From positions 4,020,722-4,084,721 of the forward strand of contig OZ037766.1 in NCBI GenBank assembly GCA_964035545.1: a stretch of 64,000 nucleotides of DNA. The letters are read 5' to 3'. Both the position numbers and the translations under genes were made by a program. The notes under the pieces were generated by a model. The model worked only from the letters and a program-made list of their open reading frames with translations. It did no database searches and had not been told where the DNA came from. This stretch comes from Bugula neritina. Its lineage: Eukaryota; Animalia; Bryozoa. Shown here piece after piece: positions 42,994 through 49,856 of the stretch; position 1 is the stretch's first letter; every line of letters starts with the position of its first letter.

Positions 42994-44496
42994 CAGTTGC
43001 ACATAAATTCATATATAATATAATATATTATGTAATATAGTATGTATACTATGTTATATAGAATATAATATGGTATATGTATAGTAAAAGTTTGGCAGCT
43101 ATGTCATTGAAAAGCTGTGGTCCAAAACTGCTTATAATTTGCTTAGAACTTGCAATATCTACCATGTAATAACTTCTGTTGATATTTATGTTATTATCTT
43201 TTTCATTGATGCATATGTAGCTTAAAAGTTTGTGTCTGCAAATTTCATTTTATAGCTGCAATAACTTGTGTCAGTTTTCTTACGCTTACAATCATATTTA
43301 CCTAAATATATTCTTATATACAGGTTCTTCATAAATCAGATCTTTCCTGTGCTGCTGTAAACATCATAACTTTTATACTGTGTATATAGATTCAGTTGAA
43401 AAACTGTAAACACTTAGTGAGTGCAGAGAAATAAACTAAACTCATTTTACTCTAGATTTTGTCCACTGCAGCCCCTTGACATTTGAGTAAGGTCTCAGCA
43501 AGGTATATGAGAGAAAAGCTAGTAGCAGTGGGAGCTCTCTCAATTTGGTGACTTGTTTCTTAGACTGATAGTCTTAAGTGAAAATAATATGAACATAATA
43601 ACATGTGTATGAAATTAAAATATTCGTTGGTGAGAAAACATATTTAAATGTCGGGTCATAAAAAACATCTAAACCCTAAGGCAATGGAGCCAGTAATGAA
43701 TTTAATGACAAGAAGCTGTTTATACATTCATTAACAATACTGTTGGTCATACATATCTAAACTTCGATGTGAAATTACAATCATTTAAAATTTACTTGTG
43801 TTGTTATAATGCAATTGATATTATAATAACGTCCTAAACTTGTCTTTACAAAAAAACTTCCATTTAATTCGCAAAAACTACCAGATATGTGAAGCTTTGT
43901 AAATTCTACAATCATCATTAAGATTAGTAGTCAAACTACCGATTTTGCCTCCACACATTAGCTGATGGGTGAATTACTAAATTTTCCTATTAGGGGGTAA
44001 ATTGTAACTACAGTGATTTTAGCACTCGGAAAATAATTATTATTATGATAATTATTAGTATAATATAGACACATCTCTTACCTACTGTAACATAAACAAT
44101 CAGGACCGTGGCTAAGGTGCTAGCAATAAGATGGTATTACAAATTATTTATGTTCAATCTGCAGTTATAAGCTTTCTGCATCAACTATGGTAATAATAAT
44201 AATAATGATAATACTATCAATTTTAAAAGCAATTTTATTTAGAGTTATCAGGGGAGACAACTTATAAAATATGACGTCACATAAAACAAATTATTAACAT
44301 TGTCTATTTATGTTATATGCTTTTTTGTTGAAAGTTTCAATTATTGTAAATAATATTTATGTTTGAAAAGTAATTTAACATTTAGTTTTTTAACAATAAT
44401 TTAAATGATCAAGTTTTTCATAACATAAGCAGTATTCACACTTTCTTATTATAACTTTTCGTTATTTATGAACCCGCTTGAATCGCCGGATCAGTT

Positions 44497-44543
44497 ATCG
44501 CTTCTCGGCCTATTGGCTAAGATCAAAGTGTAGTATCTGTTCT
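44497..44543 (+). ncRNA. U2: U2 snRNA, 5' fragment (nt 1-47)
   Basis: ATCGCTTCTCGGCCTATTGGCTAAGATCAAAGTGTAGTATCTGTTCT is the canonical U2 5' end with stem I and the branch-point recognition motif GTAGTA (44530-44535). Confidence 0.97.
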
Positions 44544-44801
44544 ACAGTTCCAAAGAGTCTCTGCTATCAAAGGCAAAGAGTATCTGTTCTAATAGTCTAC
44601 CATAGCTCCCTTAAGTTCGAGTTCACTCCTTAAGGTGAGGGCGTGCAATCGCTACGGTTGAAGAGTTCGCTCTCCCTCTGTTTGCAACCACTATTCCATC
44701 TTAGTACCTGATCAGGTGATTCCAAAACCAGTCCTTTTCAGGACTATCAGGCACCAACCATTCAGAGTCCCACTCTACCCCTTTTTTCAAGAGCCCCAAA
44801 C

Positions 44802-45887
44802 ATGGCCATCTTATCAGCCATCGTTAGGGGCTGCCCTGACAGCTCCACGGAGTTTTTCAACAAGCTGAAGGATCTCGTCGCTCTTAACAGAGTGAAATCA
44901 GTAGTGTCACTCCAGACTGGAGTGGAAATCGCCTTCTTAGACGAAGAGGCTTTAAAAAAGTTCGTCATGGGTGCCCCTGGAAACTGGGCAGTCAAGTCTT
45001 CTCTTTCCAGAGACATCTTGGTAACCGTTACCCCGCAGCTGGGTCAAGGCCACCACGAGGTGACAGACCAAGCACTGGGCGCTGCCCTTGCAAATTGGGG
45101 CACAGTGAAAAGTGGGCGCAAGCTCACTTACAAAGAGTTCCCCTCCATCGAGAATGGTGTAAGACAGTTCTTTATAGAACCCAAAGTGGGCGTGGTGATC
45201 CCAAGCTCAATAAGATTTGGTCCTGCTGCCTTCAGGATTACATACAAAGGCATGATCCGCACCTGCCACAGGTGTAGATCTACCGAACATGAGGTGGCCT
45301 CTTGCCCTGAGAAGTGGTGCCACAAATGCCACCAGATTGGTCATCTGAAGAGCAGCTGTACCAACACAGCACTCTGTGTGGTGTGTGGTAGCACAGACCA
45401 CTCCTTCACCAGCTGTCCTGAGTCCTACAGGAACAAACTGGCTTTGAAGACAACTTGGTCAAGACCCCCCAGATCCCCAACTCAGACCTCAGGCCAAGAG
45501 AAGAAAACTCCCAAGGCCTCGAGCAACAACAAAGCTAAAAAACCAGCAGAAGCAAATACTTCTAACAAGGAGTCAGAAGAGGACAAGGCGGTGGAACCCC
45601 CCAAAGAACCTAGCCGAGAGCCAACAGCCCCCCTGACGCAAAAGCCCCTGGCCCAAAAACCAGAAGGAGCCCTGCGCAGACGCTCAAGCTCCCGGCAAAA
45701 CAGAAGGAAACGAAGAAAAGAAGGCAGCCTCTCCCCATTAGGACTTCCTACCCCTACATCCATCCCTGAGACTAGCTCTGACACCGGCAATGATGTGGCA
45801 AATCGTTTCAGTATTTTAGCTGACTCGGAACTGCTTCCCAACACAACAGATGTAGGGGAGATGGAAACCAATCACCAATCATCATAA
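44802..45887 (+). CDS. Retrotransposon ORF1, gag-like, three CCHC zinc knuckles, 361 aa
   Basis: CHRCRSTEHEVASC, CHKCHQIGHLKSSC, CVVCGSTDHSFTSC; ENGVR motif; basic disordered tail with an NRFSIL motif. Confidence 0.93.
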   Translation: MAILSAIVRGCPDSSTEFFNKLKDLVALNRVKSVVSLQTGVEIAFLDEEALKKFVMGAPGNWAVKSSLSRDILVTVTPQLGQGHHEVTDQALGAALANWGTVKSGRKLTYKEFPSIENGVRQFFIEPKVGVVIPSSIRFGPAAFRITYKGMIRTCHRCRSTEHEVASCPEKWCHKCHQIGHLKSSCTNTALCVVCGSTDHSFTSCPESYRNKLALKTTWSRPPRSPTQTSGQEKKTPKASSNNKAKKPAEANTSNKESEEDKAVEPPKEPSREPTAPLTQKPLAQKPEGALRRRSSSRQNRRKRRKEGSLSPLGLPTPTSIPETSSDTGNDVANRFSILADSELLPNTTDVGEMETNHQSS

Positions 45888-48800
45888 TGGCTGGCAGATT
45901 GAAAATCACCACCATCAATGTGAATGGGATAAGGGATCACTCCAAAAGGGCAAACGTGATATCCTCTCTCCAAGAGTCGAGAGCTGACATACTCCTCTTA
46001 CAGGAAACACACTCAGAGAATATCCCTAATTGGCCCGGACATAAATATGTGAACTTTCACACAGAATGGTCTGGAGGGACTGCCATACTAGTCAACCCAG
46101 CCTTTGGAGGAAAAGTTACCAACCCCCTTTACGAAGAAAACGGCAGAATCACTGCAGTGGACGTAGATGTAGGTAGCGCCGCCCTGAGGATTGTGAATGT
46201 GTACGCACCCAACAACCCTAGAGAGAGGCGTCAATTTTACAGTCAGTGTCTCCCAGAATACCTTTCCTTTACAAGGAAAAACATTCTAGCGGGAGACACA
46301 AACTGCATCACATCAAGAGACCTTGACAGCCACTCGCATTCCGACTCTACGGCAAGCCTCATCGGCTCGGAAGAGCTCAGAGTTTCAACCTCAAACTTTA
46401 GAATTACTGATATCTTCAGAGCCAAACACCCCACTGCTAAGGATTTTACCTGGTACGGCCACCAGGGAAAACAAGCAAGCCGACTAGACAAGTTCTTTAC
46501 TCCCATCGACTTGCCTTGTCAGGTTAGCAGTGAATTCTTTCCGTATTCCGACCACAAGACTGTCTCGTTGGTAGTCTCCCTTGATGCAGACGGTGCTACC
46601 CCGGGTAAATCCTACTGGAAACTCAATGTCTCCATATTGGAACATGAGTCGTACAGGGGAAGAATCCAAGAGCTCCTAACAGACTGCCGCACTCTTCGAC
46701 TGGCTTTTGACACAGCGGGAGAATGGTGGGCCGACATCAAAAGGAGAATAAAAGTAGTGACTACCAAGCACTGCTCTCTTGTCAAAGCCAGTAGAACTGC
46801 AGAGGAAACCGACGTTCGATCTTCTCTCCTGAGGGAAACTGACTTGTCGGAAATATCTGTCCTGAAGGAAAAGCTGAGGAGGCTGGAGCATAACAGATTC
46901 CAGGCTCTTAGGGCCAGAGCCAGGTTCAGGAGGGATAAGTTCGACGAGAAATGTACCCCTTTCTTCTTTAACAGAATAAGGGAGAGAAGAGCTCAGAAGT
47001 CGGTAACCAAAATCAGGGCGCCGTCTGGCAAGGTTGAGACTAACACGAAAGGCATTTTGAAGACTTTCCGTGACTTTTACACAGACCTGTACAAAAAGGC
47101 CCCTTACGACGCCAGGACACAGGAGAGAATCCTGCAATGCACAACAGAACATCAAAGTGCTACCGACGATGACCTTTCAGTTTTAAAACTGACCCCTGAC
47201 AACCTTCGTCACAGCGTGTTCTCGAGTAAAACAGGGAGCACTCCGGGGCCAGATGGCCTCCCTGCTGAATTCTACAGAGTTTTCTTTGAAGATTTGGCAG
47301 ATATCCTAGTGGAGGTTTATATGGAGATCGCAACCACAGGGCGCATCCACTGCTCCATGCTGGAGGCGGTCACCATATTAATCCCCAAACCAGGAGACCC
47401 ATTAGAACCAGCAAACTACAGACCCATCTCTCTCCTCAACACTGACTACAAACTGCTGACTAAACACCTGAACACCCTCTGTTTTCCCAGCATTCTTGAG
47501 AGCTGCATCTCAACAAACCAGCTTTGTGCAGTTCCAGGAAGGGACATCAGAGATGGAACCCTCATGATCAGAGATGTTATTCAGTATGTTCAAGACAAGC
47601 ACGGCAAAGCCATTCTTATGTCCCTCGACCAGAAAAAAGCATTTGATGCTGTAGACAGAGACTTCCTCTTCAAGTCTCTGGAAAGGTTTGGCGTACCAAC
47701 ACACTTGTCTGCCATACTGAAGACTCTCTATACCAACACCTCTACGAAGATCCAGGTAAATGGACACCTGTCTGAGCCTGTCATGCTAGAGAGAGGAGTT
47801 AGACAAGGTTGCCCCCTTTCACCCACTCTGTATGTCCTATACGTACAGATGTTTGCGAATTTCGTCACTGAAAACCCACGCTTCAATGGAGTAAGGACCA
47901 CCTCGAACAACATCGCAAAGCTCACGGCATATGCAGATGATCTTCTATTTTTCTGCAGTGACGAGTCTGATGTTACCGAGGTGTTTGAATCCTTCGAATC
48001 CATCAAACAAGGAACTGGGAGTATGCTCAACACAGACAAGACTCAGCTACTCCCAATTGGCAACGCCAACTGTGTCCAGTATCAGCGGTACGTAGTGGAA
48101 AGAATGAAAGTGTGTGGCATAACCTTTTGCAACCGCTCTTTCCAAATGATAGCCAACATCAACTTTGATTTGGCACTCAGAAAGATATGCAAAAGAGCAG
48201 CGGGATTAAAGAACCTATCGTGCACAATTAGAGGAAAGGAGAACGTCGAGAAACGTTGCCAAGCCATCTTTTTCTTCAACTCTGTCCTAAAACCGGGGCA
48301 TGGAAATTTTGACCATCAAAGGCTCCCCCTGTTCTCGTATTACCTGAGTCAATGGTTCAGGAATTTCCCTCAGGGTTATTCCAACCAGACTCCCCACAGT
48401 TTCCACAAATCTGAAACTGCCACCCTGTGCTTGAACATCTGGCAAAGTCTGACCGACCACCAGACCGTGCTCGCACAGTTTCTGACCCCCCCTAGCCAGC
48501 TATATTGCTGGCTAACCTCAGGTGACGAGCAGGCAGACCTTAAAACCCCAAGACCACAGTGCAGGGACCTAGAAGACACAGTCCTCAGTTCCCTCATAAG
48601 GATCTGGAGCACGTCTTCCCTGCCAACAAAGGACATTGACTTTGGATGGAGAACAGCAATGGGAGGCCTTAAGACAGGCGAGTTTGTCTCGCAATACAAC
48701 ATCCCTGGAGCTAAACTCTCTTGTGTCTTCTGTGACGCATGCCCTGTTGAGACAGTAGAACACTTGTTCGTCTCATGCAAGGGCTTAACTCCAGTTAGAG

Positions 48801-49114
48801 CCATCATGGCCCACTTCATCCAATTGCTCGGAGGCACCATCCAAAGACAAGCCACACCCGCAAAAATCCTCTTTTGCCTGGGTGTGCTCTCGGACCCTCC
48901 CGATCGGACAACTCTTTTTTCAGTTTTCCAACTCATTTCCAGATGTAACCAAGTCATTTGGAACATTCGGAATGAGCTGGTCTTTTCATACCAGCCACAC
49001 AATCTTCACTCCAAAATCCAGAAGATTGAGGCAGTCGTCCAGTGCACAAGCCAACATCTTCTCGAAGAACATAGGCTCTGTGCACTGGACGGTGCGCTAG
49101 AACCAGGTGAGTAA
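45887..49114 (+). CDS. Retrotransposon ORF2: APE endonuclease, reverse transcriptase and C-terminal zinc finger, 1075 aa
   Basis: APE: TINVNG, LQETH, NVYAPN, GDTN, RLD, SDH. RT: PGPDG, YRPISLLNTDYK, LDQKKAFD, GVRQGCPLSP, YADD. C-terminus: CVFC..ETVEHLFVSC. Confidence 0.96.
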   Translation: MAGRLKITTINVNGIRDHSKRANVISSLQESRADILLLQETHSENIPNWPGHKYVNFHTEWSGGTAILVNPAFGGKVTNPLYEENGRITAVDVDVGSAALRIVNVYAPNNPRERRQFYSQCLPEYLSFTRKNILAGDTNCITSRDLDSHSHSDSTASLIGSEELRVSTSNFRITDIFRAKHPTAKDFTWYGHQGKQASRLDKFFTPIDLPCQVSSEFFPYSDHKTVSLVVSLDADGATPGKSYWKLNVSILEHESYRGRIQELLTDCRTLRLAFDTAGEWWADIKRRIKVVTTKHCSLVKASRTAEETDVRSSLLRETDLSEISVLKEKLRRLEHNRFQALRARARFRRDKFDEKCTPFFFNRIRERRAQKSVTKIRAPSGKVETNTKGILKTFRDFYTDLYKKAPYDARTQERILQCTTEHQSATDDDLSVLKLTPDNLRHSVFSSKTGSTPGPDGLPAEFYRVFFEDLADILVEVYMEIATTGRIHCSMLEAVTILIPKPGDPLEPANYRPISLLNTDYKLLTKHLNTLCFPSILESCISTNQLCAVPGRDIRDGTLMIRDVIQYVQDKHGKAILMSLDQKKAFDAVDRDFLFKSLERFGVPTHLSAILKTLYTNTSTKIQVNGHLSEPVMLERGVRQGCPLSPTLYVLYVQMFANFVTENPRFNGVRTTSNNIAKLTAYADDLLFFCSDESDVTEVFESFESIKQGTGSMLNTDKTQLLPIGNANCVQYQRYVVERMKVCGITFCNRSFQMIANINFDLALRKICKRAAGLKNLSCTIRGKENVEKRCQAIFFFNSVLKPGHGNFDHQRLPLFSYYLSQWFRNFPQGYSNQTPHSFHKSETATLCLNIWQSLTDHQTVLAQFLTPPSQLYCWLTSGDEQADLKTPRPQCRDLEDTVLSSLIRIWSTSSLPTKDIDFGWRTAMGGLKTGEFVSQYNIPGAKLSCVFCDACPVETVEHLFVSCKGLTPVRAIMAHFIQLLGGTIQRQATPAKILFCLGVLSDPPDRTTLFSVFQLISRCNQVIWNIRNELVFSYQPHNLHSKIQKIEAVVQCTSQHLLEEHRLCALDGALEPGE

Positions 49115-49360
49115 CATGGAGGCTTGGCTGACTCCTTTCCTTAGTCCTAGTCAAAGGGCAGGCGAGGCTGCGTGGGGAGTAGTCTGTCCTGACAGCAATT
49201 GCCGCATGATCTGTGGTCATGGCTGTCAAAGGCTCCTTGGGGCAAGTTTCGGCTGGCCTCTCGGAGTGCTTTATTAGAGAGCTCGATTTAGGTGACAATC
49301 TCGTTTAGTTTAGTAGGAACACTAACCGCACTGGTTAGCTTCCGCTCTCTAATAAACAGG

Positions 49361-49513
49361 AGTATCTGTTCTAATCAGTTTAATATCTGATTCGTGGCAC
49401 ATCGTGTCACTATGATATTAATCTGATTTTTGTAAATGGACGGAGCGCAGAAGCTTGCTTCGGCCCTGTCACGGGTTGTCTTGGTATTGCAGTACCTCCA
49501 AGCACGGCCCACC
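49361..49513 (+). ncRNA. U2: U2 snRNA, 3' fragment (nt 36 to end)
   Basis: AGTATCTGTTCTAATCAGTTTAATATCTGAT (stem IIa), Sm site ATTTTTG 49426-49432, stem III with GCTTGCT, loop IV ATTGCAGT 49486-49493. Confidence 0.95.
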
Positions 49514-49744
49514 TCCCCTATTGGGGAAAATAAAACCAAATTAAAATATTATAAAGGTCTTAATTAACAGTAGGCTTTTCCTACCATGCCCGCTGTTAAA
49601 TACGAAATTCAGATTAATTCATCGTAATATAGTATCAATGTTGAGAACAAAGGAGGTAAGCTACTGTCAAAATTGCCCCTAGTAGTTGGACCATATAAGT
49701 GAGATGGCATAACTTCTATGTATCCTTTGTGAGAACAAAAGTAA

Positions 49745-49856
49745 GTGTAATTAATTACAATAGCATGTAATTGTAATTAATTACATTGCTTTTTAATTGT
49801 AATTGGCAAATCTTCATGTAATTGTAATTAATTACATGTAATTGACCTCAACGCTG
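49745..49856. repeat. GTAATTAATTAC palindromic-motif repeat, probably a non-autonomous DNA transposon end
   Basis: Three GTAATTAATTAC copies ending in GTAATTGACCTCAACGCTG. Confidence 0.5.

Follow-up and report, generated by a model that had tools for sequence, protein, structure and literature searches.

The window analysed here, 64,000 nucleotides of contig OZ037766.1 of the bryozoan Bugula neritina (assembly GCA_964035545.1, positions 4,020,722 to 4,084,721, forward strand), contains a U2 small nuclear RNA (snRNA) gene that is interrupted by a long interspersed nuclear element (LINE), a retrotransposon without long terminal repeats (non-LTR). U2 was the only Rfam family matched in the 64-kb window and was found as two pieces, both on the plus strand. 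The 5' piece was reported at 44497-44680 with 54.7 bits, the true alignment being limited to the first ~47 nt, and the 3' piece at 49335-49517 with 122.4 bits. The boundaries given in Table 1 were set by aligning these pieces with the genome's four intact U2 genes. U2 positions follow the species' own numbering, in which one extra A is present at AAAG; own nt 36 corresponds to human/vertebrate nt 35.

Table 1. Features of the interrupted U2 gene and of the inserted element. Positions are those of the window. TSD, target-site duplication; ORF, open reading frame; UTR, untranslated region; APE, apurinic/apyrimidinic endonuclease; RT, reverse transcriptase.
Feature	Position (nt)	Strand	Details
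U2 upstream (promoter) region	44014..44496	+	~480 bp; 83% identity over a 556-nt alignment with the sequence preceding the intact U2 at G000:C2:3990k
U2 snRNA gene, 5' piece, nt 1-48	44497..44544	+	Rfam and alignment; ends with the upstream TSD copy (13 nt, 44532-44544)
Insert, 4,816 bp	44545..49360	+	two open ORFs
Filler, 34 nt	44545..44578	+	unique in the genome (whole-genome pattern search)
Second, internal copy of U2 nt 36-50	44579..44593	+	perfect; AGTATCTGTTCTAAT
Element proper, 5' UTR	44594..44801	+	start AGTCTACC.. similar to the start of relative L050, AGCTTACA..
ORF1, 361 aa	44802..45887	+	open
TAATG stop-start overlap, ORF1/ORF2	45885..45889	+	
ORF2, 1075 aa	45887..49114	+	open
APE endonuclease in ORF2	45887-46591 (aa 1-235)	+	Pfam Exo_endo_phos PF03372, aa 9-223
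RT in ORF2, YADD box	47381-48094 (aa 499-736)	+	Pfam RVT_1 PF00078
zf-RVT Cys-rich domain in ORF2	48602-48781 (aa 906-965)	+	Pfam
3' UTR hairpin, 9-bp stem	49155..49190	+	conserved loop GAGGyTG..GGGGAGTAG
Terminal long-range stem, 13/13 pairs	49270-49282 with 49344-49356 (span 49270..49356)	+	
Free 3' tail CAGG	49357..49360	+	
U2 snRNA gene, 3' piece, nt 36-192	49361..49517	+	begins with the downstream TSD copy (13 nt)

An earlier note on this DNA, made from the sequence alone, had placed the 5' U2 piece at nt 1-47 and the 3' piece from nt 36. The latter position stood, while alignment with the intact genes extended the 5' piece to nt 48, and the TSD, given as 12 bp in the note, was found to be 13 bp, AGTATCTGTTCTA, perfect, with its copies at 44532-44544 and 49361-49373. 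The 3' junction falls between GT and AGTA within the GUAGUA box that pairs with the branch point, as the note had said, and the insertion is in sense orientation to U2. The 4.8-kb insert with two open ORFs was likewise recovered, at 4,816 bp with ORFs of 361 and 1075 aa. The split U2 differs from the intact genes by a single substitution, a C at 49465 where four of four carry T; together with the open ORFs and the perfect TSD, this fits the young family that had been proposed. In the whole genome (216 Mb) the 5' half and the 3' half of U2 were each detected exactly five times, which amounts to four intact genes and one split gene. A five-locus alignment revealed a CACAC..TT box near -60 that is common to 5/5 U2 loci, the interrupted one included.

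The filler (44545-44578) and the internal U2 copy (44579-44593) at the 5' junction were absent from the earlier note. The filler contains ATCAAAG (= U2 nt 26-32) directly before the internal U2 copy, and no match to the 34 nt was found in the element, its relatives or the degraded copies described below. The arrangement can be read in three ways. The template RNA may have borne upstream U2 sequence from a source copy co-transcribed from a U2 promoter, the filler then being a mangled 5' part of U2, and the position of ATCAAAG just 5' of the internal copy favours this reading. It can also be read as a second, abortive insertion into the upstream half-site, or as extra nucleotides captured through template jumps. 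No ribozyme of the kind found at the 5' end of R2 was detected in an Rfam scan of 44400-49600 at E<=5, which returned only the two U2 pieces and chance matches.

Both proteins of the element are those of an APE-type LINE. Between aa 155 and 205 (nt 45264-45416) ORF1 contains three zinc knuckles of the canonical form CX2CX4HX4C, with a Pfam CCHC match, followed by a basic, low-complexity C-terminal tail; it shares 37-38% amino acid identity with the ORF1 of L070/L071. Alignment of ORF2 with the L1 endonuclease showed the catalytic motifs of the APE (N, E, D-x-N, D and SDH) to be present. The best solved relative of ORF2 in a PDB search was by far the human L1 ORF2p (E 7e-59, aa 5-799); R2 proteins matched in the RT domain only, and no R1Bm or TRAS1 endonuclease chain was among the matches at E<=0.001. 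The endonuclease matched Pfam PF03372 and not PF14529. By these matches the endonuclease and RT are not closest to proteins of the R1 clade (R1, TRAS, SART), the site-specific APE-type LINEs of arthropods. No restriction-like endonuclease (RLE) was found in ORF2 by Pfam, zf-RVT being the sole domain C-terminal to the RT. The assignment to the APE type and not to the RLE type, made in the earlier note, is thus upheld by Exo_endo_phos, RVT_1 and zf-RVT, by the APE motifs and by the CCHC knuckles of ORF1. In a collection of 5.8 billion sequences the nearest proteins were at most 45% identical to ORF2 and none bore a family name. With this best match of 45%, and with no paper linking bryozoans with Tx1 elements found in a literature search, the family is to all appearance undescribed, as the note had suggested. 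Cluster names, a protein atlas and literature searches gave no Tx1 or Keno label for the clade of the element.

The 3' end of the element is structured. Every sampled member of a seven-member clade of related ORF2 sequences (see below) has the hairpin of the 3' UTR at the ORF2 stop or directly behind it, and three distal pairs of the hairpin stem vary with the pairing kept. A covariance model of the hairpin matched only this clade among 28 sources, and in the genome only 49155-49190. Further downstream, in 4/4 families of the inner clade, the 13 nt that precede the final CAGG are paired at 12-13 of 13 positions with a segment 61-147 nt upstream. This terminal stem is also present, with compensatory changes, in L050, L052, L054 and L061; between the window family and the families P0002/P0003 four positions differ, each compensated in the partner arm. 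The final 16 nt, CTCT[A/C]ATAAACAGG, are common to four families. The same tail precedes other sequence in L050, L051 and L061, and we concluded from this that the element ends at ..CAGG and that the AGTA at the junction is derived from the target. By analogy with the 'stringent' LINEs, hairpin and terminal stem are likely to be the handle by which the RT recognizes its own RNA.

Apart from the insertion in U2, the genome holds a degraded cluster of the family (L043, G000:C2:3983221-3987135), ~80 kb upstream of the full copy and with at least three pieces within 4 kb. The pieces are 93%, 86% and 67-79% identical to the full copy, carry internal deletions and miss both ends; in one of them a 1.2-kb internal deletion is accompanied by 13 replaced letters. 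The ratio of nonsynonymous to synonymous divergence (dN/dS) between the full and the main degraded copy was 0.21-0.22, both in ORF1 and in the ORF2 start. Therefore, most of the divergence accrued while the family replicated under selection. Neither 5'-truncated copies nor a short interspersed nuclear element (SINE) partner with the same 3' UTR were found; a DNA search with the 3' UTR and the hairpin model matched only the full copy, these genome counts being lower bounds in which only the best candidates were scored. An intact U2 gene precedes the cluster by 3-7 kb, in the same orientation.

Several relatives of the element occupy the same gene. Two families, P0002 (L052) and P0003 (L054), were recovered from several samples and share 37-45% amino acid identity with the window ORF2. 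Their contigs carry U2 on both sides, with a 16-bp duplication and a 3' junction at which ..CTCATAAACAGG is directly followed by AGTATCTGTTCTAATCAG; the order ..ATAAACAGG then AGTATCTGTTCTAATCAG marks the same site as that of the window element. A 19-mer across the junction had 12 exact matches in metagenomes, three of which were real relatives, all belonging to the P0002/P0003 families, the rest being due to chance. P0156 (L081), at 31% amino acid identity, is inserted within one unit of a U2-U1-5S tandem array; its A(n) tail is followed by GTATCTGTTCT and its 5' junction is without U2 nt 31-36. P0015 (L083), at 32% identity and of the same clade as P0156, has an A(n) tail followed by TCTGTTCT, the boundary published for Keno, a U2-specific family. 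The 3' boundaries of the A-tailed L081 (GTATCTG) and L083 (TCTGTTCT) thus differ by 3 nt.

The array that holds P0156 was seen in L081/L082 on a 70-kb invertebrate contig (ERZ25071797), with U2-U1-5S rRNA units of ~1.95 kb. At least two copies of the A-tailed U2-specific LINE are present in it and share the 5' junction without U2 nt 31-36. Next to one of these copies a second, different APE LINE is found in the opposite orientation.

In a maximum-likelihood tree the window ORF2 formed a clade with P0001, P0002 and P0003 (SH-aLRT, the Shimodaira-Hasegawa-like approximate likelihood-ratio test, 99), inside the seven-member clade (100). P0156 and P0015 were placed in a separate clade (98), and the backbone between the clades was weak (SH-aLRT 80-82). 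Other members of the tree are found at other sites. P0018 (L059) is a 1299-aa APE LINE, 32% identical to the window ORF2, whose A-tail leads into the 3' two-thirds of a divergent 5S rRNA (Rfam 35 bits), and a truncated copy of a similar element stands before it. The arrangement resembles tandem insertions of a 5S-targeting (Mutsu-like) family. The 3' UTR of P0004 ends at a (TA)n tract. The P0001 family (L050, L062) has the identical 3' tail; its insertion site, AGAACTTCCG.., shows a 10-bp duplication and lies ~470 bp upstream of a 5S gene. Either the family targets a 5S ribosomal DNA (rDNA) spacer, or possibly one locus has been seen in several samples; both are conceivable. No match to the P0001-family flank was found in the Bugula neritina genome. 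P0001, P0004 and P0018 are metagenome sequences, and their target specificity is read from one locus each.

Taken together, the element is very probably a full-length, recently inserted LINE of the L1/Tx1 group that is specific for the U2 snRNA gene and works like the Keno family. By analogy with target-primed reverse transcription as known from APE LINEs in general, its insertion most likely proceeded as follows. ORF2p, through its APE domain, would nick the bottom strand of U2 opposite the step between T35 and A36 (own numbering), inside the GUAGUA box, and the freed 3'-OH would prime reverse transcription from the 3' end of the RNA. That end, ..AAACAGG-3', would be kept single-stranded by the 13-bp terminal stem, with the hairpin further upstream as the likely handle for the RT. 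The 13-bp duplication would result from a second cut, made in the top strand 13-16 nt further downstream, and the 34-nt filler and the second copy of U2 nt 36-50 from imprecise joining at the 5' end. Translation of ORF2 probably relies on termination-reinitiation at UAAUG. The element is probably transcribed from the intact upstream U2 promoter; such co-transcription is plausible. R2, a mechanistic analogue, is transcribed together with the gene that it targets, and its junctions are precise at the 3' end and variable at the 5' end, as cited in PMC4494074 and PMC4640811.

Several observations weigh against this reading. The full copy is the only one with termini, so that specificity for U2 is not demonstrable within this genome; the specificity claimed in the earlier note held across the relatives (P0002, P0003, P0156 and P0015 all lie in U2) and could not be upheld here from one copy. 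Collecting the copies and their 3' junctions likewise yielded one junction in the genome, in U2, and a cluster without termini. No U2 trace was found beside this degraded cluster by pattern, Rfam or short-word BLAST searches, although repeated insertions into one U2 copy may have left the cluster behind. Two other samples with the same organism label and one 2016 'symbiont metagenome' (runs X3, X5 and X7) hold U2 and a variant similar to ORF1 only, and no other contig of the element; these runs are without the unique flank 44300-44480 and are hence uninformative on expression or on presence and absence. Among the relatives, P0001 is the closest by identity (42-45%, varying with the alignment used) and lies at a non-U2 site. 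In the metagenome contigs L051 and L061 the 5' flank is the expected one and the 3' flank is not, which makes them either off-target copies or assembly chimeras. The tree was built without named Keno or Tx1 reference sequences. Finally, the 3' flank of the element starts with AGTATCTG (vertebrate nt 35), and the start published for Keno, TCTGTTCT, lies 4 nt further downstream. We take this offset as a small shift and not as a different site, because the boundary also varies between the A-tailed L081 and L083.

The ORF1-like stretch of X3, X5 and X7 corresponds to window 44906-45461 at ~95% identity, and its differences match neither genome copy. This hints that the samples are genetically distinct from the assembled individual, conceivably a cryptic lineage. 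One contig of run X5 carries U2 nt 1-35 and then, exactly at the inferred nick site (44531), 173 letters starting CACTGCCAATGG that are absent from the assembled genome; it may represent another element or the U2 context of another organism.

The element could also be specific for U2 and yet stand outside the Keno lineage, in a bryozoan-centred Tx1-like clade with a structured CAGG end that acquired U2 targeting independently of the A-tailed clade. This is a real possibility, which we hold to be clearly the less probable one. In its favour, the seven-member clade is separate from the P0156/P0015 clade, elements with other flanks stand among and between the clades (P0018 at 5S rRNA, P0001 at a non-U2 site, P0004 at (TA)n), the hairpin model matches the clade of the window element only, and the 3' boundary is 4 nt off that published for Keno (PMC6136364). 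Against it, the weak backbone leaves equal room for a single ancestor that targeted U2 and for later switches from it, a 3-nt difference in the boundary exists even within the A-tailed elements, and the tree has no named Keno sequence.

That a non-specific LINE landed in U2 by chance is very improbable. Only one terminus-bearing insertion is present in the genome and the degraded copies lie outside a U2 context, but the U2 genes make up ~1 kb of 216 Mb, and four other families from two clades are found in U2 at the same position and in the same orientation.

An assembly artefact that joined a LINE to U2 fragments is just as hard to credit. Run X1, a public run with the same organism label and possibly the source sample of the assembly, gave contigs that cover the whole element at 100% and match both junctions without a difference. 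They reach 30 letters into U2 on each side, which is one letter below our bridging criterion; a break of this kind is expected of 31-mer graphs at a repeated gene. The short reach and the possible identity of X1 with the assembled sample leave some room for an artefact, but the two U2 pieces complete each other and overlap by exactly 13 bp, as target-primed reverse transcription predicts, and the relatives show the same architecture on independent contigs. A U2-targeting element of the RLE-bearing Utopia type, which would share the target region (PMC4640811), was refuted by the N-terminal APE with its catalytic motifs and by zf-RVT as the only domain after the RT.

Outside the U2 gene, ~220 bp 3' of its end, the stretch 49737-49845 consists of AT-rich nested palindromes and direct repeats with the core TGTAATTAATTACA. 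Its read depth is several-fold above that of nearby sequence in all DNA-like runs, and for this reason we regard it as a dispersed repeat, perhaps similar to a miniature inverted-repeat transposable element (MITE).

U2-targeting LINEs are rare instances of retrotransposons in a tiny, highly conserved niche, which here comprises five genes in 216 Mb, one of them occupied. The element represents a new, undescribed family of the already known U2-targeting (Keno-like) kind and not a new kind of element, and the known picture of site-specific retrotransposition is unchanged by it. It extends the U2-targeting type to the Bryozoa, a phylum not named for Keno in PMC4640811 and PMC4494074. The conserved RNA structures at the 3' end are a candidate recognition signal for the RT, and relatives with a shared 3' end and different flanks bear on how APE endonucleases change their targets. 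If U2 targeting was acquired independently, the clade would pair this targeting with a distinctive 3' end made of the hairpin, the covarying 13-bp stem and the free CAGG, and those relatives that share this 3' end but lie near 5S rDNA or at (TA)n would offer a natural series for mapping the target choice of the APE.

Among the known site-specific elements, R2 is specific for 28S rDNA and has an RLE and a 5' ribozyme similar to that of hepatitis delta virus, and SART1 is specific for telomeres and translates its ORF2 via a UAAUG stop-start overlap. The window element differs from R2 by its APE and by having no Rfam ribozyme at its 5' end. It shares with SART1 the UAAUG overlap between ORF1 and ORF2. 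Mutsu is a family of the Tx1 clade that targets 5S rRNA. The relatives of the window element at 5S rRNA (P0018), at (TA)n (P0004) and ~470 bp upstream of 5S (P0001) fit the frequent switching of targets described for the Tx1 clade, in which Kibi targets (TC)n and Koshi (TTC)n (PMC4494074). Indirect pointers to a possible placement in Tx1 are L1 ORF2p as the best solved relative, the presence of zf-RVT and the target-specific relatives. Utopia elements are U2-targeting non-LTR retrotransposons of the RLE type (PMC4640811). They share the target gene with the window element, at nearly the same 3' boundary, but carry an RLE after the RT and no APE, whereas the window element has an APE and no RLE.

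Keno is an APE-type, U2 snRNA gene-specific non-LTR family of the Tx1 clade, reported from vertebrates, lancelet and hydra (PMC4640811, PMC4494074). It goes back to Kojima & Fujiwara 2004, as cited in PMC4640811, PMC4494074 and PMC6136364, so that APE LINEs with U2 as their target date back, as a known kind, to 2004. The published Keno 3' flank starts with TCTGTTCT at U2 nt 39 in vertebrate numbering (PMC6136364). Unlike Keno, the window element resides in a bryozoan, is at most 45% identical in amino acids to anything in the searched protein collection, and ends in a structured ..ATAAACAGG instead of an A-rich tail. Like Keno, it combines an APE and RT in ORF2 with a separate ORF1, is inserted in sense orientation in the GUAGUA/UCUGUUCU region of U2 with a U2 fragment as its 3' flank, has a precise 3' and a variable 5' junction, and keeps a low copy number tied to a low-copy target. 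The operational definition of Keno, an APE LINE in U2 at the GUAGUA/UCUGUUCU site, covers the window element.

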